In this document: piece by piece, positions 11,985-24,235 of the stretch | Numbering within the stretch: position 1 is the stretch's first letter | How the letters are laid out: each line of letters starts with the position of its first letter | Assembly (NCBI GenBank): GCA_004431415.1 | Contig: QPMI01000409.1 | Location: forward strand, 248,001 to 312,000 | From: Cyanophora paradoxa CCMP329 | Taxonomy: Eukaryota > Plantae > Glaucophyta | DNA: 64,000 nt | Reading direction: 5' to 3' | Made by a program: the position numbers and the translations under genes | Notes under the pieces: model-generated | What the model saw: the letters and a program-made list of their open reading frames with translations, nothing else | Told to the model about the DNA's origin: nothing | The model's database searches: none

Positions 11985-14900
11985 ATGGACCTCGGTGGCG
12001 TGAAGCAGGAGCCACGGCCCGGCGCCGATGCATACGCATATGAAAATCATGCGACGGAGAACGGCGACGCTGCGCGCGCCCCAGCGGCAGCGTCGTCTTC
12101 TTCGGTCCATACTCGTACAGGCGCAATTTCCTTGGAGGCAGGGACCTCAAGGGCGAGCGACGGAGCCGCCGGGCCGCCCGGGTTCAACCCGCGGTTCGTC
12201 AAGCCGTACAGCAGGGACGCCATCGACCACGCGCCGGAGGAAAGGGCCCGAGCCGGCGAAGACGACGATCCGGAATCCTCGGACTCCGCCGCGGGCGATG
12301 TGAAGGCCGAGAGCGCGAGGGGCGGCAGCCTGGAGCTTGAGGAGGGCGAGGGCCCGGGGCGAGGGGAGTACAGCGAGGCGCAAGGGAGCCAGGAGCTCGC
12401 AGGGAGCCAGGAACTCGGAGCGGGCGGGAGCCAGGAGGTGTACTGGGACGCGGGATTAGAGACACAGGCCCTCGAGCCGGGTGTGCCCTTTTCTGCGGGT
12501 CGCCACGCCCCACCCCACCACCTCTGATCATGAACGCGCCTCGCAGCGCCCTCCCAGGAAGCGTTCTCCGCGGATGTACCTTCGATTGTGAATCTCCCGT
12601 TTTCTGGAGGGCCCGCTGACTCGGGCCGCGCGCAGGCGCCGGGGGTCGAGATGGCGAAGAGGTGCGCCCCAGCCCAGATTTATCATCGCGGAGAACAAGT
12701 TTGCGGGTTCCCGCCGTCGAGCCGTGCCGCCCCGCATGCGCAGGTTCCTCCCCGTGGAGGAGTTCTACGCGTTCGGGCCCCTCCAGGTGGTCGTCATGGT
12801 CGACCACGACAACGAGCAGAGCTTCGTCGTGCGCTGTAATATTGATTAATTTCGAATTCTTCGAGCCTAGCATTCTAATCTCGCCTGATATTCTCTTACA
12901 TTCGCGACCTTCGCCTCTTCCCCATATTGGCTGACGTTATGACGCCCACCTCAATGCTTGATTTTCACGCAACTGCGTCCTCGAAATCATGTCAGGGGAT
13001 GCTGCGGAAGTTCGCGGGGCAGAAGGAGCGCTTCTTCGCGGGGGTCTACGTGCTGGTGTTCCACGGGCAGGATGTGCCGACGAAGCGGGCGGTGAAGGGC
13101 GCCGAGGCCCACGAGCTCCGGCCCTTCCTCCGCTGCGTCGAGGCCCTCACCACCGCCAAGGCCCGCCCCCCTCCGCTCCCTTGACATCCAGCCAAGAGAG
13201 TGCACAGCGCGCACAGCGCGAGTGCACAGACGAGAGCATATCCACGCACAAACGAGCACATAGCATCCCAACGTTAACAGATCAAGAGTCTAAAGATGAA
13301 CGAACTTGCAATTGTAAAACTGCGCGCAGAACGCGGCCGACTCTGCGCTGGCGTTCATCTCGGGATTCCTCGCCGCCACGGGCCTTCTAGACGGCTCCGT
13401 GCGCCCTGCCCGCGCCCCTCTTTGTTTGCTCCGTTTATTCAACCTTTGAGTGGCCCCCAAAAAGAGCAAAAATACCGCCTTTCCCCGCGCCCAATCATGA
13501 CAAATCAAAACCCCCACCGTGCATTCGAGAACGTGCACCCACCAGCGCGCGCCCCCGCCGGGGCGAGTCAGGTGGAGTTCGTGATGGTCTCGGGCGACAA
13601 GTTCTACAAGGAGACCGCCCACTGGCTCCGCTGGCGGGGATACCCTGCTGCTCACCTCTCCGGTCCGGCCCGCGCGCGCGCCCAGCTTCGGGCTGCTGGC
13701 CGCACGGCTGACGCGAGCAGGCGTGGAGCTGCGGGTGGCGCTGCAGACGTTCCGGGCGGACCTGGAGGAGGAGCGGGCGCGGGTGTGGCGGGGGGAGCTG
13801 GGGGCGGGGGAGGCGCCGCTGGGGCGGAGGACGCTGCACCTGCTGCTGCGCGACGCCGTCCGCAACGCCGCCTCGGGCCACCGCGTCGACGAGCTCGAGA
13901 AGGTGCGCCGGCACGTACACGTCGCCCCCGCCCCCGGCCGGTCTCCGCCCTCGCCTCGTCGTCGTGCCCCGGCCCACCATAAGCTTCACATCGCTTGCAC
14001 AAAGAAACTCTAGATGGTAGAAAACCGCTCTTATTCTTAGCGGCCCTCTATTCTCGTGAGGGACGTAGGCGTACGGTCGCGATCGGGCGCGCGGTGGGCC
14101 CGGCCCGCTTGCCCGCACCTCGATGGAGCCGTCGCACGGCAATCACAAAGAGAGAAAGAGAGCCCCCTTTCTGACTGCCTTTAGCTGCTCCTTGAAGCGC
14201 GGGACCCCGAGCTGACTGCAGTGTCGCAAGAGAACGCGCTCCCTAGACTAGAGCGTTTGTTTTGGCTGGACGAGGAGAACTCGCGTCTTGACTGTTCCAG
14301 AGCCCTTTTCGCCTCCGATCTCGGGTTGCGCGGGCTCAAGGCGCCCGGCCCTCCGCCCCCCGCAGATCCTGGCCCGCGTCAAGGAGCGCCTGACGAGCGA
14401 GCGGGAGCCGCCCCCCGCCCGCAAGGCCTGCCCGCCCGCCCCCGGCCCTCCCCCGCCCCAGGCGGCCCTGACGCGCCGCGCGGCGGGGCTCGCAGGAGGG
14501 CCTGACGAACCTGATCCAGCACGTGATGACGAAGCGTGAGCGGGAGATCGTGAGCGCTGGGACCGTCATGGACTCCCTCATCAAGGCCCGCCCCCTCAAA
14601 TTAGAGCCGCTTTCGAGAAGCAAGCCTTTGGAATGCTTAAAGTTCTAATCCGAAATGCCCTCGAAACGAGAAACCCTTTCGGTAATTCGAATTTGAAGGC
14701 CTTCCCCTGAGGGCACGCCCGCAGACATGCTTCATCATGGTCCAGAACGGCGACGTCACGTACCGTTTCCAGTGCGGCCCCTCCTCCCGACTCCGATTTG
14801 CTTTTGAGGGCGCGGTGTCCGGCGGTCTCCGGCTCACCCCCGGCTCCCCGCAGGGACCAGAGCGCGCGGCGGCGGGGCAAGCGGGCGCGGCCCGACGGGA

Positions 14901-17900
14901 CCCTCGAGGCGCCCCTCCCCGCCTCGCCTCGCGCCCCCCCGCTCCCTTGCGCCCAGCCTCCCGCTCACAGGCCACTGCGTGCAGCCGGCACCGAAGCACC
15001 CGCGGGCCGCCCCCGGGTCACCCGGGCCCGCAGACCAGCCCCCGACTGCCGTGCCAGCCTCGGACCCAAGCAGAGGGGAGCCGGCGGCAGCACAGGCAGC
15101 GCTCGTCAAGGGGCCTCCCGAGGAAGATGCGCTTCCGGTCTGGCTCGAACTGTGCACTCATCGCCCCCCTCCTGGTCCCCCCGGGCCCCTCGTTTCGCCA
15201 ACCACTCCGCAGCAACCACGCACCTGCGCCCGACTCCCTCGACATCGCATTCTCTCAGGCACGCCGTCGCCCCCAGCAACGGCATATTCTGTTTCGGGGG
15301 GAAAAACCGAAACGAAATGCAAACTCGTCCGTTGTGCGCGGCAGGCGTCGGACGTGGAGATGCTGGAGGCGGCGCCGTCTGCGAGCCAAGAGTCGCTGCC
15401 GGCGGGGGGCGGCGAGGAGGGCGCCGCCGCCGGCCTCTCGCGCACGCAGCGCCGCAAGTGGAAGACCGTCCTCTGCCGCGAGTTCGCGGCCACCGGTGCG
15501 CCCTTTCCTGCCTCCTTTCTCTTTGTCTTGGTCCCCCTCGAGCGGGGCGGGGCGGGGCGCAGGGGAGTGCCCGAAGGGGGAGCGCTGCGGGTACGCCCAC
15601 GGGGAGCACGAGCTGCGGAAGAAGGGGCCCAAGGCCTCCTCGGCGCCCCCGCCCAAGGCCCGCCCTGCGCCCCTCCACCGCGGCCCCGGCCTGACGCCCT
15701 CGCGGCAGCAATCCGGGGGCGGCGTGGTGCCGGTGGCGGTCAGGCAGCCTCGCTACGTCCTGGCCGACGGCACTGCTGCCGCGCCGGCGCCGCCGGGCCC
15801 GGGGTCGCCTAAGACCTGCCCGCCCGCCGTGCCGCCCTCGGGCGCGCCGCCGCGAGGGGCGGCCGGGAAGGACCCCCGCGACGGCCCCGCGGAGGGGGCG
15901 GAGGCGGCGGGGCGGAGGGGCGGAGGGAGGGAGGGGCCGGCGCAGGCCCGCGCCACGCGCCGGCGGAGGGGCGGCGGCCCTCAACGACCTCCTCCTCGCC
16001 GTGCACGACGAGCTGCGCACCCGCCGGCCCGAGGTCCCCGTCGACGTGCCCCCCAAGGCGCCCCGCCCCTCCCTCCCCCGCCCTCGAGGCTGCGGCTTGA
16101 CCGGCGGCTTGTCCTTCCCTCCCCCCCCGCCGCGCAGCTGCTGGAGCCGTGGCTGACGCGGCTGGCCGGCTCCCTTGGGCTCAGCCTCGCGCTGCCGGCG
16201 GCCGGTGGCGCTGGCGGGGCGCTGGTGCCGGCGGGAGGGCCGGAGGCGGGGCGCGGGGCGGGCGGGGAAGCGGAGCAGGAGCGCGCGGCGGTGCTCCTGG
16301 ACGAGATCGTGCCCAAGCTGGGGTACCGGCTCGTGGGGCCGGGCCAGGCCGGCCCCGCCGTGCTCCCCGACCGCACCCTCCCGCCGCCCCCGCTCCCCTT
16401 CAGCCCCGAGGAGCCGACGAGGCACCAGCTCCGCCTCTTCCTCGACGCCTCCCGGGACCAGTGCGCCCCCGCGCCCCGCTCCTCCGCTGCGCTGCTCACC
16501 GCGCTCGGCCTGCAGGCGCTGGACGATAGCGCGGGAGGGCGGGGAGAAGGCGAAAGGGGGCGAGAGGCGGACGTACCTGGTGCACGGCGTGGGGCCGGCG
16601 GCGGGGCGCCTGGCGCTGGACGTGCGGGTCGTGAGGGCGGAGGGGGACGAGCTCTGGCACCCGGCGCTCGCCCTCGGCGGCCCCGCCTTCTTCTGCACCC
16701 TCCACCTCTGCCGCCAGCCCGACCTCGAGACCGAGGTCGAGGGGGCGTTGCTCCAGCAGGACGGCGCCCCCGAGGGCGACCGGGGCCCGCCGGCCGCCTG
16801 CTTCGCGCGGGGCTCCCACGTGCGCCTCCGCCCTGTCGGAGCTCAGCGCAGCTCAGCTCAGCTCAGCTCCGCCTCACGCGCGCCTCGCGCGGCAGGGGGA
16901 GGTGGTGGCGCGCTTCGAGGTGCGCGTGGCGGCGTGGCCGGAGCCGCGGGAGCCGCTCCACCTCCTCGCCCGCCTCCGCCTCCACGTCCGCCCCCCTCCG
17001 CCCCTCTCTTCAGCTCTCTCTCTCTCTGACGGGCGGGCGGCCTGCAGGGGGGCCGGGAGGTGGCGGGGGCGCTGGACGGCGCCCTGCTCCCCGTCGACTC
17101 GCTGGTGGAGATGGTGCGGCGGGGGCGCGGGGGCGCCTCGTGCAAGCCGGAGGCCCGCTCCTTCCTCCACGCCGGGCCCGCCCAGAAGTCCTTCCTCCGC
17201 CGCCTCTGGCAGCACCACCGCTGGCCCGCCGCCCCCCGCGCCCCCCATCGTCACCCCCTTCACGCCCCCCCAGGCGCTACGAGTGGGCGCGGTTCGCGGA
17301 CGACGTCAAGGAGCTCGTCCACGTTGCCAGGCGCGCCCGCCCGCTCTCGTGTTCGGCTCTAGCCGCAGCAGGCGGCCTCGCTCCTCTGTGATAGCGCCGT
17401 CCGTCGGCTAATGAAGTTCGGCGTCTACTTTAGCCCCGCTGTGTCTTGTGTGTTGCCTCGAACTGCCGCTGACCGGGGTGGCGGGGGCGCAGCCACGGGC
17501 AGCGGGGCTACCGGCGCCTCCTCGCCGCCACCCCGGAGGTGCGGGGCGCCGTGCCCCCCCGCCCTCCTCGGCCGCGCCGCCCCTGACGCCCCCGCAGATG
17601 TTCCAGTGGATCGAGGTGCGCTCGAGCTCCCGCGCGCCCCCTCTCCTCTCTCCTGTCTTGCCTTGAGGGGGCCCCCGCAGTCGGCCTTCGAGCTGCTGCG
17701 GCACGAGCCGATGCGGGAGGCCGCCGCCTCGGAGGCCGAGGGCCCCGCCCACCCGCCCCCCGCCGTGCGCCCCGCCCCGGCCCGCCGCGCCCCGCGGTGG
17801 CGCGGGCGCTGAGGGGGCGCCCCCCGCGCAGGCCGTCCCCTGGTCTGCAGTCGCGCGCCACATCGAGACCCTCTTCCCCGGTAGGCGCCGTGACCGGGGC

Positions 17901-20034
17901 GCGCCGCCGCCGCCTCCGCCAACGCGGCCGGGGCCCCGGGCAGGCTACTGCGGGATCTGGGCGGGCCCCGGGTGCCTGCCCCTGCGGGAGATCTACGCGG
18001 CGGGAGACGCCGAGGTGGAGGGCACCGACCCCGCCGCCGCCTGCCTCGGGGCGGAGGCCTGGAGCCGCCTCACCCCCAACGACGTACACTTCCTCCGCGA
18101 GCGCGGTGCGGGCACCTCCCCCCCCCCTCCCGCCAGCGGCGCCGCGTGACGCCCAGGGCGGGGCGGCAGCCTTCCGGCTGGACGCGGCGGGGGCGCCCCA
18201 GCCGCTGCCGGACCGGCCCTGCGGCGCGCCCTCGTGCGGGCACGAGGCGTGCCCCCGCCCGGGCTGGCCCGACCTCCTCGACGAGGGTGCGGGCCGCCCC
18301 GCCAGTCGCCCCCTCCCCCGCGCCCCTCACCTCACCTCCCCCGCAGAGCGCTTCCGCGAGCTCTACTCGTGGCTCTTCTTCGCGCGCCGCACCCTTGCGC
18401 TGGTCCGCCAACCCGCCCCCCTCCTCTCCTTTTTGCCGCCCGCCGAGGTGCTGGCAGGTCTCGCGGACGCTGGGGGCGCTGGCGCGGCCCGTGGCCCCTG
18501 TCCCCTTCCTCTCCCGCAACGCCGCCGAGGCCGTGCGCCGCCCACTCCTCCCCTCCACCCTCCAGGACCGCAAAGATGCTGGGGGCGGTATTAAGCAGAA
18601 TTCTCTGAGCGGCCGCGCCGCCGCCTTCGCCACGTTTCCCGCGTGCCGACTCGCCGGATGCCGCAGGCCCTCCTCGCGCGGGGCGAGCTCGGAGCCTTCT
18701 GCCTCCGCCTCTCCTCCCTCACGGTGTGCCCCGCCCCGCGCCGCGCCTCGCCTATCCAGTGACGCGCCTGCAGTGGCCGGACCCGCACACGGCGGAGCCC
18801 GTCGTCTCGGTCCTCACGGAGGAGGGCCCCGACGGCCCGGGGCCCCGCCACGTGCGCCCAAGACCGGGCCTCGCTCGGCTGCGATCTGCGCTAGACCTAG
18901 ATCGCCACGTGCGGCTGGGCCCGAGCTCGCTAGGGTCCGGCCCGCCCTCTGGTCTGGATCTAGGCTGTCACCCCGGGCCCTCTCCGCCGAGCACCGCTAG
19001 GACCTGCGCAGATCTAGATCTAGATCGAAGCACCGGGTCAAGCGAGCGGGGGCGGGCGCGCAGGTGCAGCACGTGCTGCTAGGCCCTGAGGACTACGAGA
19101 CGCCCGGGGCACTCCAGCGGGTCCTCGACCGCTGGAAGTGCCGCGCCCCGCTCGACCCCCGCGTCCGCTCTCCCCTCTCTCCCGCTCCGCTCTCTGCGTC
19201 CGTCCCTCACCGGCCGCCGGCGCCGCGCAGAGCGAGGCCCTCGGCACGCGCCTGGAGGGGCCCCACAGGCCGAGCGCCCCCGCGGACGGCCCCCGACCCG
19301 TCCCCCCTCCTCGGCCCCAGCCGCCCAGCGCGCCTCGCCCCGCCCGACCCGCCGCGGGCCGCGCCGGCCCGGCGGCTACGTCGCGCTACGTCAGCTCCAG
19401 CGGGTCGCTGCTCGCCGAGGGTCCCCGCGCCCCCGCCCCGCCGCCTCGCCGCCAGGGAAGAAGGAGGGCCCCGGGGGCCCGCCCGCCCCAGCCATCGCCC
19501 CGCAGGCAGCAGCCGCAGCTCACCTTTGCGCCGCCCTCTCGCAGGTGCGCCGCGGCCCCGCGCCCTCGCGCCGGCCGGCCGCTGACGGCCCTCGCAGGGC
19601 GCGCGGGGCGTGAAGCAGGAGCTCGCGATCGGGGCGGGGAGGCAGGTGGCGGCGCAGAAGGAGCGCCCCGGCCCGCCCAGAGCCCGCGACACGCCCCGCG
19701 GAGGGCGCGCCGGAAGCGCTGCTGCCCGCCCCCTCAAGCAGGAGCCTGGCGGCCGTCCGGGCCCCGAGGGCGGGCTCCTGGGCCCCGGCCCGCGCCCCCG
19801 CCCCCGCCCCCGCCCCCCGGCCCCTTCTCCAGGGGACAGGGGTACCACCCGTACATCGTCGCCGCCCCGCCGCCCCAGTACCACATCTCGCCTTCCCCGG
19901 CGTACGCGCCGCCCTCCGCCAACCCGTTCCTGGGCCCCCAGCAGCACCCCTTCGGGCCCCCGCCCCTGCAGTACCGCCACGCACCCCCGCCGCCCCCGCC
20001 GGGCCCTTTCTGGCCCTGGAATCCGCAGTATTAG
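11985..20034 (+). CDS. Large multi-exon protein: PIN/NYN-like nuclease + helical/wHTH-like domain + CCCH zinc finger + unknown C-terminal region (could be two genes 3' of about 16 kb)
   Basis: Exons give VVMVDHDNE (~12790), TAK|NAADSALAFISG (~13330) and FVMVSGDKFY..TAHWLRWRG (~13580), matching NYN/PIN acidic motifs. KWKTVLCREFAAT|GECPKGERCGYAHGEHELR (15455-15620) is a C-x8-C-x5-C-x3-H finger. The Pro-rich tail ends WPWNPQY*. Confidence 0.6.
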
Positions 20035-20474
20035 TCTAGGAACTCAAGGCAGTTGCGCCGCGCGTGTTTGCGCAGTTTCATCAGGACCCTGGCCTAGCCT
20101 AGTAGATGTGCACCCGGCCCTCATCATGGCATGGTCTCGATCGATACTTGACCATTAGCAATCGCATGCGCAAGCTGAAGTCTGCAAATGGATGCTCGGT
20201 ACCGGCGAAGACTGCGCCTCTAGATCTCTCGCGATCGGATCGCGCTCGCATGCATTCCGAAGTTCTGTGGTGACGCCCCTTGCCTCTGACCTGAAGCGAA
20301 CCCCCTCATCTCGCGGGCATCCGATCCAGACTAGACCCCGGGGCCGGGCCGCGCTGCCTCGCAAGAGTTACAGAGCGATTCCTATTCGGCGACACTGCGC
20401 CTGGCCGGCCCGGTTCATATGCTCCGGATGGCCGACGAGACTATCGAGGTCGCCGCGGATGCCGCGGAGGCCGC

Positions 20475-21170
20475 TTAGTCCTCGTACAGGCGGCACTCGT
20501 CGGTCTCGGGGTTCTCCTTGCAGAACTGCGGGCGGCGTCGGGGGCGCGCCCCGGGGCCGGCCGGCGGGGAGGCGGCCGCACCTCCTGCAGGGGGTCGGCC
20601 TTCGGTTGCGCCTTCTGGTGCGAGAGCTCCGCCTCGAGCTCCTGCCAGCCCCCGCATCTCAGCGGCGCCCGCCGGGGAACGGGCGGCGGCGGGCGGACCT
20701 CGACCTCGTCCCACGCGACGCGCGCCTCCTTCGACGTCGCGCCCTTCTCCTCAGCGACGGCGCGGGCTTGGCTGATCGCCTGCGACCGGTGAGAACAGGC
20801 CGGCCGCCCGCCCGGCAATCAGAGATTACCTTCTGGATGCGCTCCTGGATGCTCAGGTCGGCCGAAGCGAACACGCCGAACTGGATCTTGGGCGCGGCTG
20901 CCAGAGGGAGGTAAGATAAGACGGGCGGCCGCGAGTCAGCAACTGTCCCATGCCGTAGAAGGCGTCGACTCACCGGCAGCGAAGATGCGGGCACGGATCG
21001 GGTTCGAGGCAACGCGGGCCGAGGAGCCGAGCGACGCAGCCTGCGCGCAGATCAGCAGTATCCACGAGATATGGGGGGCCGATGAGGTGCACCGGGACGG
21101 CAACGCGCGAAGCGAACGACGGCACGGCGGCCGCGGCGAACACGGGGCAGGGAGCGACGAAGGCAGCCAT
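20475..21170 (-). CDS. CP12: CP12 Calvin-cycle regulator, copy A (6 exons, plastid transit peptide)
   Basis: MAAFVAPCPVFAAAAVPSFASRVAVP|AASLGSSARVASNPIRARIFAA|AAPKIQFGVFASADLSIQERIQK|AISQARAVAEEKGATSKEARVAWDEVE|ELEAELSHQKAQPKADPLQE|FCKENPETDECRLYED*. Contains the AWDxVEEL core and the C-terminal Cys pair. Confidence 0.95.
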
Positions 21171-21217
21171 CTTACGGGGTACAGGAGCTGAAAGGCTCCG
21201 CTGTACCCGGCAACAAT

Positions 21218-21934
21218 ATGGCCTTCGTCGCTCCTTGCCCCGTTTTTGCGGCCGCTGCGCCCTCCTTTGCGCCGGCGCGCGTCGCCGCCTCGGTATGTGT
21301 GATTTGAAGTCGCGGCGGTGGCTTCCAAAACCAAAATCTGTGCTCGCAGGCCGCCTCGCTTCGGTCGTCGGCCCGCGTGGCGTCTAACCCTATCCGTGCT
21401 CGTGTGTTCGTTGCCGGTGAGTGTGCCCCACGCCTAGCCGAAGACAGGTCGCGCTACCTGGAGTGAAAAGCCACGATGGCTTTCTGTGGAGTGACCTGTG
21501 TATCCGCGCAGCCGCCCCCAAGATCCAGTTCGGCGTGTTCGCTTCGGCCGACCTGAGCATCCAGGAGCGCATCCAGAAGGTAATCTCTGATTGCCGGGCG
21601 GGCGGCCGGCCTGTTCTCACCGGTCGCAGGCGATCAGCCAAGCCCGCGCCGTCGCTGAGGAGAAGGGCGCGACGTCGAAGGAGGCGCGCGTCGCGTGGGA
21701 CGAGGTCGAGGTCCGCCCGCCGCCGCCCGTTCCCCGGCGGGCGCCGCTGAGATGCGGGGGCTGGCAGGAGCTCGAGGCGGAGCTCTCGCACCAGAAGGCG
21801 CAACCGAAGGCCGACCCCCTGCAGGAGGTGCGGCCGCCTCCCCGCCGGCCGGCCCCGGGGCGCGCCCCCGACGCCGCCCGCAGTTCTGCAAGGAGAACCC
21901 CGAGACCGACGAGTGCCGCCTGTACGAGGACTAA
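21218..21934 (+). CDS. CP12: CP12 Calvin-cycle regulator, copy B (6 exons, plastid transit peptide)
   Basis: MAFVAPCPVFAAAAPSFAPARVAAS|AASLRSSARVASNPIRARVFVA|AAPKIQFG... with an identical mature protein. GT-AG introns are intact at homologous positions. Confidence 0.93.
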
Positions 21935-22369
21935 GCGGCCTCCGCGGCATCCGCGGCGACCTCGATAGTCTCGTCGGCCATCCGGAGCATATGAACCGGG
22001 CCGGCCAGGCGCAGTGTCGCCGAATAGGAATCGCTCTGTAACTCTTGCGAGGCAGCGCGGCCCGGCCCCGGGGTCTAGTCTGGATCGGATGCCCGCGAGA
22101 TGAGGGGGTTCGCTTCAGGTCAGAGGCAAGGGGCGTCACCACAGAACTTCGGAATGCATGCGAGCGCGATCCGATCGCGAGAGATCTAGAGGCGCAGTCT
22201 TCGCCGGTACCGAGCATCCATTTGCAGACTTCAGCTTGCGCATGCGATTGCTAATGGTCAAGTATCGATCGAGACCATGCCATGATGAGGGCCGGGTGCA
22301 CATCTACTAGGCTAGGCCAGGGTCCTGATGAAACTGCGCAAACACGCGCGGCGCAACTGCCTTGAGTTC

Positions 22370-23530
22370 CTAGACTAAGACTGCGGATTCCAGGGCCAGA
22401 AAGGGCCCGGCGGGGCGCGGGGGTGCGTGGCGGTACTGCAGGGGCGGGGGCCGAAGGGTGCTGCTGGGGCCCAGGAACGGGTTGGCGGAGGGCGGCGCGT
22501 ACGCCGGGGAAGGCGAGATGTGGTACTGGGCGGCGGGGCGGCGACGATGTACGGGTGGTACCCCTGTCCCCTGGAGAAGGGGCCGGGGGCGGGGCGGGGC
22601 GGGGGCGCGGGGCCGGGGCCCAGGAGCCCGCCCTCGGGGGGCCCGGGACGGCCGCCAGGCTCCTGCTTGAGGGGGGCGGGCAGCAGCGCTTCCGGCGCGC
22701 CCTCCGCGGGGGCGTGTCGCGGGCTCTGGGCGGGGCCGGGGCGCTCCTTCTGCGCCGCCACCTGCCTCCCCGCCCCGATCGCGAGCTCCTGCTTCACGCC
22801 CCGCGCGCCCTGCGAGGGCCGTCAGCGGCCGGCCGGCGCGAGGGCGCGGGGCCGCGGCGCACCTGCGAGAGGGCGGCGCAAAGGTGAGCTGCGGCTGCTG
22901 CCTGCGGGGCGATGGCTGGGGCGGGGCGGGCCCCCGGGGGCCCTCCTTCTTCCCTGGCGGCGAGGCGGCGGGGCGGGGCGCGGGGGACCCTCGGCGAGCA
23001 GCGACCCGCTGGAGCTGACGTAGCGCGACGTAGCCGCCGGGGCCGGCGCGGCCCGCGGCGGGTCGGGCGGGGGCGAGGCGCGCTGGGGCGGCTGGGGCCG
23101 AGGAGGGGGGACGGGTCGGGGGCCGTCCGCGGGGGCGCTCGGCCTGTGGGGCCCCTCCAGGCGCGTGCCGAGGGCCTCGCTCTGCGCGGCGCCGGCGGCC
23201 GGTGAGGGACGGACGCAGAGAGCGGAGCGGGAGAGAGGGGAGAGCGGACGCGGGGGTCGAGCGGGGCGCGGCACTTCCAGCGGTCGAGGACCCGCTGGAG
23301 CGCCCCGGGCGTCTCGTAGCTATAGTCCGTAAGCGCACGCGGGGTCCGGATCGAGGGCGACAGTCCAGATGCGCATGCAGACCGGATCCCAGCTCGAGCT
23401 CGAGCAGGGGACTTGAGCTCAGAGCTCAGGCCTGGGTGCACGTGGCGGGCCCATGGGCCGTCTGATCATGAGATCTAGAGGATCCCAAATCTAGACGACG
23501 GGCTCCGCCGTGTGCGGGTCCGGCCACTGC
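22370..23530 (-). pseudogene. Decayed duplicate of the 3' exons of the 11985-20034 gene (distal right palindrome arm)
   Basis: Reverse complement of about 18770-20040 with frameshifting indels, for example ...SANPFLGPSSTLR versus ...SANPFLGPQQHPF. Confidence 0.7.
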
Positions 23531-24235
23531 GGGTCTCGTGCATGCTTGACGAAGTAGCGGCGTGCGGCGGCGCTGTGCAGGGCCGTCAGCGGCCACCGGC
23601 CGGTGCGCGCGAGGCCTAGGGGGCCGGACGGGACCCGGCGCGCCTGCTACATGTACAGCTGCAGATGGCTGCAGATGCAGCCTTGGCTGAGAGCACGAGC
23701 GGTCAGCAATCCAACTTACTACGGTAGCTAGCCGCACGTATGCAGCGCCGCCTAACGCGTCGCCGAGCGCCGCTGGGGCGCTCCGACTGGGCAGTAGCCG
23801 CGGGGAACTGGGCATGGCCATGGGGGCGCGGCGAGAGCGGCCTTGCAACTTGCACCTTGCAGCTCGCTGCATGGGGAACCGCAGCCGTGCGGCCTGCGCA
23901 TGCCGGGCACTGCTGTGGGGGTAAGGCGAGACAACTTGGCAGGGGGGGGGTGAAAAGAGGGGGGCGAAGGTGCGGAGGGCCGGAGGCACCTTGAAGGGGC
24001 GCCGCCCTCTGTACCCCTGGGGCGCCGTTCGCCAACAAACACTGTCGAAGGGTCGCGGCTCTCGGAGGCCATCCGACGACTCATGATATGGACGCCCGGG
24101 ACTTGATCGCTGGCCTGCGCGGCGCCTCCGATCACTCACAAACGCCCTTATCTAGAGACGAGGCGCGCACCAGCCGAGGCCGAAGCCAGAGCTCGAGGCG
24201 CTTGCTGCTTCAGCGCACAGAGCTAGCACACATAA

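Follow-up and report, generated by a model that had tools for sequence, protein, structure and literature searches.

A palindrome with two expressed CP12 genes in Cyanophora paradoxa, probably an old inverted duplication kept uniform by recurrent gene conversion

In small families of nuclear genes whose products work in plastids, RBCS being one, concerted evolution keeps the mature parts uniform while the transit-peptide parts differ. Ampliconic palindromes with arm-to-arm gene conversion were reportedly described on mammalian sex chromosomes by Rozen et al. in 2003; their inverted, gene-bearing arms are said to be >99.9% identical, non-coding DNA included, through intrachromosomal conversion, and the structures to be far older than this identity suggests. 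For human PMS2 and PMS2CL, a gene and its inverted partial copy reportedly exchange their 3' part, the rest being diverged or absent. PMC3398144 reports sequence exchange in this inverted duplication. Here we analyse a palindrome with two genes for the Calvin-cycle regulator CP12 on contig tig00020554 of Cyanophora paradoxa; all positions are those of the 64-kb window, the whole stretch of DNA that was analysed. We consider it likely that this locus is an old, nearly spacer-less inverted duplication kept uniform by recurrent gene conversion, from which both ends of the homology have escaped.

The two arms (Table 1), compared by BLAST and by global alignment, are 98.6% identical over 1822 aligned columns. 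Across 908 nt, 19994-20901 and 22415-21508 are 100% complementary, which bears out the identical mid-arms noted in a preliminary description of this DNA. Three substitutions separate the arms, at 19111, 20030 and 20893, the last of them synonymous and located at the inner border. After correction of the homopolymer errors treated below, the identical tract comprises 19112-20892 and its mirror (out to 23300), 1781 bp with one difference, at 20030. From the axis outward, each arm contains exons 3-6 and introns 3-5 of CP12, about 440 bp of 3' untranslated region (UTR) and spacer, and about 940 bp with the last exons of a neighbouring gene. The duplicated unit, roughly 2.4 kb, spans about 18730-21192, giving a palindrome of about 4.85 kb in total that lies >19 kb from both window ends. 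It is the single large inverted repeat, no other repeats of at least 150 nt being found in the window. The extent first proposed, 19089-23328, is close to the borders of the near-identical arms, and the palindrome proved wider, with decayed remnants that reach 18728 and 23573.

With the sex-chromosome palindromes the locus appears to share the inverted gene-bearing arms, their near identity through non-coding DNA, the discrepancy between age and identity, and intrachromosomal conversion. Unlike them it is about 1000 times smaller (1.8-kb arms), its "spacer" is not foreign DNA but the palindrome's own decayed inner part with the 5' exons of both genes, its homology has decayed at the outer ends too, and its age is judged within the locus, not across species. 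The PMS2/PMS2CL arrangement fits the neighbouring gene on the left flank and its pseudogene fragment in the right arm; unlike PMS2/PMS2CL, the C. paradoxa tract carries two functional genes and extends over intergenic DNA, and its gene copies directly adjoin each other head to head. As in the RBCS families, the mature coding part of the CP12 pair is uniform and the transit peptides differ. Those families are mostly tandem, whereas the C. paradoxa pair forms a true palindrome, with identity through introns and flanks and with base-sharp borders.

The structure was also found in independent DNA data. Fourteen DNA runs of 2024, all with separate sample and study codes, contain 0.84-0.85 of the window's 31-mers each, and short-read (Logan) contigs (k-1 = 30 nt) of two DNA samples (X1 and X14) and of RNA run X15 were aligned to the locus. 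In both samples a single 684-nt contig at 1x depth corresponds to 20863-21546 with zero differences, that is, to the entire centre extended by exactly 30 nt (k-1) into either arm. The outer junctions are crossed by unique contigs (18778-19141 and 23271-23522), which end exactly 30 nt beyond the outermost arm difference (19111/23301). Contig depth is 196 and 167 in the arms against 73-98 for the unique contigs, about twofold. Since these contig ends and depths fit the signature of a de Bruijn graph, the data describe a unique centre and one sequence present twice in opposite orientation. An assembly artefact, whether a fold-back chimera or loci or arms made identical by collapsed polishing, could appeal to the demonstrable unreliability of the assembly at homopolymers in this very locus; we regard it as extremely improbable, given that the short-read graphs of two samples reproduce the centre and the inner and outer junctions exactly with arms at 2x depth, that both genes yield copy-specific spliced transcripts, and that the window ends are distant. 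The palindrome is real, and fold-back chimera and collapsed polishing are excluded. The preliminary description had likewise dismissed a fold-back read chimera, and had allowed that the structure might be absent from genomic DNA; the centre and all four junctions are present in both DNA samples and recur in the RNA.

The sole substitution in the identical tract, 20030/22379, falls in the last codon of the flanking gene, which reads TAT on the left and TCT in the right copy. Here the collapsed short-read contig has A in X1 and C in X14; this is either a popped bubble or a between-sample difference, possibly a fresh conversion.

The arm alignment further contains 22 indel events (23 bases), every one of them in a C or G homopolymer. 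Of the 13 sites within 19323-19788, 12 have their shorter run in the left arm, and all nine within 19801-19993 have it in the right arm. Short-read contigs agree with the longer run at every site they cover, namely six with the short run in the right arm and approximately 11 with it in the left. Contig 19831-20735 fits the longer (left) version free of gaps, and contig 22628-23300 fits the longer (right) version, to which both samples add one G at 22870 and another at 22974. In RNA, a contig anchored by its left-specific exon pieces (18667-18722, 18773-18851 and 19064-19162) continues with right-arm-like run lengths, unlike the left arm of the window. Because the short-read and RNA contigs lack these indels and follow the longer run wherever they cover it, the indels are assembly errors, not biology. 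For the published assembly (PMC6704402), PacBio RSII data were processed with Canu and Quiver and then corrected with Illumina data by majority rule, a route that leaves homopolymer errors in repeated DNA of 80% GC. The lightly decayed distal arms of the preliminary description, present in the letters of the window, are such homopolymer errors, and the arms are truly uniform out to 19112 and 23300.

As claimed from the outset, the palindrome carries two intact CP12 genes. They are six-exon genes arranged head to head, with starts at 21170 (-) and 21218 (+), 47 bp apart, uninterrupted reading frames and GT-AG introns throughout. RNA contigs of X15 join the left copy at 21039/21092, 20897/20974 and 20778/20829, and the right copy at 21291/21349, 21415/21511, 21708/21766 and 21825/21882, confirming every copy-specific intron; joints common to both copies are also present. 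Copy-specific RNA k-mer depth is 736 for the left gene and 462-503 for the right, compared with about 18-23 for the neighbouring gene. Since the copy-specific spliced contigs are this deep, both copies are transcribed and spliced. In a protein database search, an unbroken genomic open reading frame (ORF) that runs from exon 4 through the in-frame intron 4 into exon 5 matched a single cluster of three members: EP00741_Cyanophora_paradoxa_P011262 (g10880.t1, 133 aa), P011261 (g10879.t1, 134 aa) and an 85-aa mature CP12. P011262 and P011261 are letter-identical to the right and left spliced models, respectively, and both genes are thus already in the public annotation. The palindrome structure itself appears undescribed, as the words "gene conversion" and "inverted" are absent from the C. 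paradoxa genome paper (PMC6704402).

Divergence between the two copies changes abruptly along the arms. With exons joined locally for translation and for estimates of synonymous (dS) and nonsynonymous (dN) divergence, exons 1-2 show 23.5 synonymous differences over 41.7 sites (proportion pS 0.56; dS 1.05; dN 0.068; dN/dS 0.065), which for this base composition would be near saturation. Exon identity in the centre is 74-79%, and intron identity 44% (intron 1) and 54% (intron 2), compared with 48-49% for shuffled sequence, so the diverged centre of the preliminary description stands. In exons 3-6 the copies differ by one synonymous change, in the second full codon of exon 3 (dS 0.018, against 1.05 in exons 1-2), and the arms match at 100% throughout introns 3-5, the 3' UTR with intergenic DNA (440 bp) and the pseudogene fragment. 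At the inner border the sequence passes from saturated to identical within nine bases at the intron 2 acceptor (20893-20901), and at the outer border from diverged to identical within 19 bases (19093-19111). In a small sample, the converted exons 3-6 reach a third-position GC of 0.95, compared with 0.83 on the left and 0.72 on the right for exons 1-2, which are unconverted; this contrast would fit GC-biased conversion or stronger codon bias.

These measurements support the proposal that the inverted duplication is old, because divergence is saturated both at the axis and about 2 kb off, at the outer ends. Judged within the locus, the origin is much older than arm identity implies, with dS of about 1.05 in exons 1-2, introns 1-2 at shuffle level, outer remnants at about 70% identity and an in-frame stop in the right-hand exon copy. 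A recent inverted duplication that merely looks old, its centre mutating far faster (for example by hairpin-provoked repair), would draw on the known fragility of palindrome centres. We judge it very unlikely, since the outer ends, about 2 kb off the axis, are equally diverged. Moreover, saturated sites with a dN/dS of 0.065 next to 1.78 kb with one difference would require a >1000-fold step in rate across a few bases, and within the centre conservation is highest in the innermost 60 nt.

From the contrast between arms and ends we infer gene conversion as the mechanism. The identity covers introns, intergenic DNA, UTR and a pseudogene, so that it reflects copying, not selection, in agreement with the homogenisation of the mid-arms suggested earlier. 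Homologous recombination and repair depend on flanking sequence identity. Arms as diverged as introns 1-2 could hardly convert in register, which argues that conversion has been recurrent rather than a single late event and that the arms would at no time have been free to diverge. Under the single-event alternative, the paralogues would have diverged over their full length for long, until one conversion or replacement copied 1.8 kb from arm to arm. The data show only an end state, one difference in 1781 bp, and nothing in them counts separate events; yet arms diverged like introns 1-2 or the outer remnants would have left no homology in introns, UTR, spacer or decayed pseudogene from which an in-register tract of 1.8 kb could begin and be resolved, and we consider this alternative unlikely.

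On the favoured reading of an old duplication with recurrent conversion, a nuclear segment of about 2.4 kb would long ago have been duplicated in inverted orientation, almost without spacer, around an axis near 21192. The segment would have included the whole of CP12 from about 22 bp upstream of the ATG, the downstream spacer and the neighbour's last exons. Both CP12 copies would have stayed functional, and the second copy of the neighbour's 3' end would have become a pseudogene. Recurrent intrachromosomal conversion between the arms would keep 1.78 kb per arm (19112-20892 and its mirror) identical, while exons 1-2 and introns 1-2 in the centre, and also the outer ~360 bp, would have escaped conversion and diverged to saturation. 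Divergence at the ends would now block the entry of conversion tracts, giving sharp borders, and the convertible domain would be eroding from both ends. The result would be two expressed genes with the same mature CP12 and two different, selectively maintained transit peptides.

Several points weigh against this reading. It draws on one genome lineage, and the recurrence of conversion is argued from homology requirements, not observed. Support comes from short-read contigs, each of which covers part of the 4.8 kb, and Logan contigs pop bubbles, such that rare arm differences may be hidden, as at 20030. Finally, the observed 31-mer share of 0.85 compares with about 0.90 expected from the identified error sites. 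These sites cover most of the missing 15% in a match that is rough, not exact, and about 5% of the 31-mers are absent from all 14 DNA runs in excess of what these sites account for.

The 606-bp centre is a degraded palindrome rather than a unique, non-homologous spacer, and its asymmetry lies mainly in the two introns. At the exact centre, near 21192, is a 13-bp imperfect stem with a 4-nt loop, and homology between the upstream regions of both copies extends all the way to this stem-loop. Such an arrangement points to a nearly spacer-less origin, which fits a fold-back or template-switch event and does not prove one. As regards a junction like that of origin-dependent inverted-repeat amplification (ODIRA), any old palindrome would show such a stem at its axis, and the outer junction is too decayed to be read. 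The innermost 146 nt are predicted to fold at -57 kcal/mol, compared with -32 for shuffled sequences (z = -8). We found no evidence for the suggestion that central asymmetry stabilises the palindrome; the inner 146 nt still fold into a strong predicted hairpin.

The centre is covered over its full length by RNA contigs (depth about 290 per bin), and the copy-specific spliced contigs end at 21121 and 21237. Although just ~22 bp of the original upstream DNA remain with each copy, transcripts of both are abundant. The transcripts may overlap divergently, and the promoters must lie in the partner gene or in the 47 bp between the start codons. It is conceivable, if doubtful, that the first exon and intron of each gene hold the promoter and 5' UTR of its partner, as a self-contained palindromic bidirectional promoter, and that the synonymous divergence of exons 1-2, a block of nine successive codons with changed third bases included, was partly selected to weaken a 5' hairpin or double-stranded RNA formed by the overlapping divergent transcripts of a perfect palindrome; if so, this would account for the exclusion of the centre, unlike the arms, from conversion. 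The first nine codons (21218-21250 and 21137-21170) are almost identical, with two third-base changes, and the ~15 nt upstream are alike; in the following nine aligned codons the third base differs in 9/9. Conservation of the first nine codons may reflect constraint at the nucleotide level (translation start, or an element of the partner's promoter) or a small old conversion patch.

Both predicted proteins match the Pfam CP12 domain (PF02672) over its full length (model positions 1-70 of 70) with 95 bits against a cut-off of 22.7 (E 3.7e-27 left, 3.4e-27 right); exon 4 alone reaches 29.6 bits. Like canonical CP12 (PF02672; PMC9406205), they contain the core motif AWDEVEEL, encoded across exons 4 and 5 with intron 4 interrupting it, and the C-terminal cysteine pair (CxxxPxxxxC), here CKENPETDEC in exon 6 of both copies. 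In contrast to canonical CP12, the N-terminal cysteine pair is absent, the mature part having no cysteine upstream of the C-terminal pair. The review that defines the AWD_VEEL core motif reports CP12 proteins without the N-terminal pair from C. paradoxa, Galdieria and Synechococcus PCC 7942 (PMC9406205), so the missing pair marks a known variant within the family. Binding to GAPDH and PRK is a further criterion for CP12; the C. paradoxa copies are assigned to the family by domain and motifs. The precursors begin with MAFVAPCP and MAAFVAPCP, and also differ from canonical CP12 in this glaucophyte-type transit peptide, whose phenylalanine-bearing start (MAFV/MAAFV) is typical of C. paradoxa (PMC4510345). 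Mature CP12 is identical between the copies, whereas the transit peptides differ by six substitutions and three one-residue indels. A word-based protein search with the full-length CP12 returned its own cluster and three distant plant-like CP12s, with no other glaucophyte among them, and a contig search for either CP12 protein found no encoding record.

The region called the 3' flank of CP12 in the preliminary description is indeed identical between the arms; it also includes the transcribed 3' end of the neighbouring gene, whose mirror image is a pseudogene fragment. The border of the left arm, 19093, falls within the neighbour's exon 19064-19162. Outside the arms, the 151-nt alignment of 18728-18869 to 23573-23424 shows about 70% identity (E 2.7e-16), which rises to 98% in a core of 41 nt. 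The right copy of exon 18774-18851 has an in-frame TAG right after the conserved '...AEPVV', followed by an inserted block rich in AGATCT/TCTAGA. Owing to this stop and the lack of homologous upstream exons, the right copy of the gene is a truncated pseudogene. No convincing homology was found past 18728 and 23573, and none to the upstream exons. A wider flank homology was considered and rejected, the matches beyond these points being merely compositional and of low identity (57-65%). Clusters of the palindromic words AGATCT, TCTAGA and GAGCTC occur in the diverged outer flanks, at 18880-19030 and 23380-23500, and one such block interrupts the right pseudo-exon.

Table 1 Features of the palindrome and its flanks (window positions).
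Feature	Position	Strand	Details
Left arm of near-identical inverted repeat	19093-20901	.	BLAST and alignment; short-read contigs 19831-20735 and 20708-20892 at ~2x depth
Right arm of near-identical inverted repeat	21508-23319	.	BLAST and alignment; short-read contig 22628-23300
Diverged centre, 606 bp	20902-21507	.	Exons 1-2 and introns 1-2 of both copies, and 47-bp spacer
Spacer between both start codons, 47 bp	21171-21217	.	Symmetry axis near 21192; 13-bp imperfect stem, 4-nt loop
Left CP12 gene, tig00020554_g10879, 134 aa	20475-21170	-	Exons 21170-21093, 21040-20974, 20897-20830, 20779-20699, 20641-20582, 20525-20475
Right CP12 gene, tig00020554_g10880, 133 aa	21218-21934	+	Exons 21218-21292, 21350-21416, 21512-21579, 21630-21710, 21768-21827, 21884-21934
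Outer diverged remnant, left	18728-19092	+	Inside functional left-flank gene, includes exon 18774-18851; ~70% identity to 23573-23424
Outer diverged remnant, right	23320-23573	-	Decayed copy of exon 18774-18851; in-frame TAG and inserted AGATCT/TCTAGA-rich block
Left-flank gene, last exons, proline-rich	19064-20034	+	Exons 19064-19162, 19231-~19544, ~19598-20034; stop TAG 20032-20034; RNA contigs join left-specific exons to arm
Mirror copy of left-flank gene's last exons	22375-23319	-	Pseudogene fragment in conversion tract

At least 24 homopolymer-length errors, in 19323-19993 and 22416-23088 and at 22870 and 22974, shift the frame of the proline-rich 3' exons of the left-flank gene, and public gene models are probably wrong there. 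Taking the longer run at each site together with the two read-supported insertions places the last exon in one frame, with high third-position GC. Between exon 19064 and the stop, however, the corrected frame misses by one base, so that this reconstruction supports the errors only in part and additional errors shared by both arms must be present. They probably lie in the (CCCCG)n stretch at 19776-19830 (mirror 22573-22627), which no short-read contig crosses. In two runs RNA contigs match the window from 18610 on, and the preceding 30 letters are not found in the window; their source is probably a different GC-rich transcript with a short stretch in common. Farther upstream, a plus-strand ORF of 884 aa (14737-17391) gave only a weak zf-CCCH match (E 0.63), and a Pfam scan of the window's long ORFs yielded nothing useful, as random ORFs are long at 70-80% GC.

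The locus illustrates a known process very cleanly and does not represent a new kind of system. It offers a compact natural case of a conversion domain that would be shrinking from both ends, with abrupt borders inside a small expressed gene pair, in an early-branching and probably haploid alga. For users of the public assembly, it shows that GC-rich repeated DNA contains many homopolymer errors, which here frameshift the gene model of the neighbour, and that apparent decay between repeat copies in the C. paradoxa genome needs a check against reads before interpretation. For the biology of Cyanophora, CP12 dosage comes from two genes with one mature protein, which bears on knock-out and expression work on Calvin-cycle regulation in glaucophytes.

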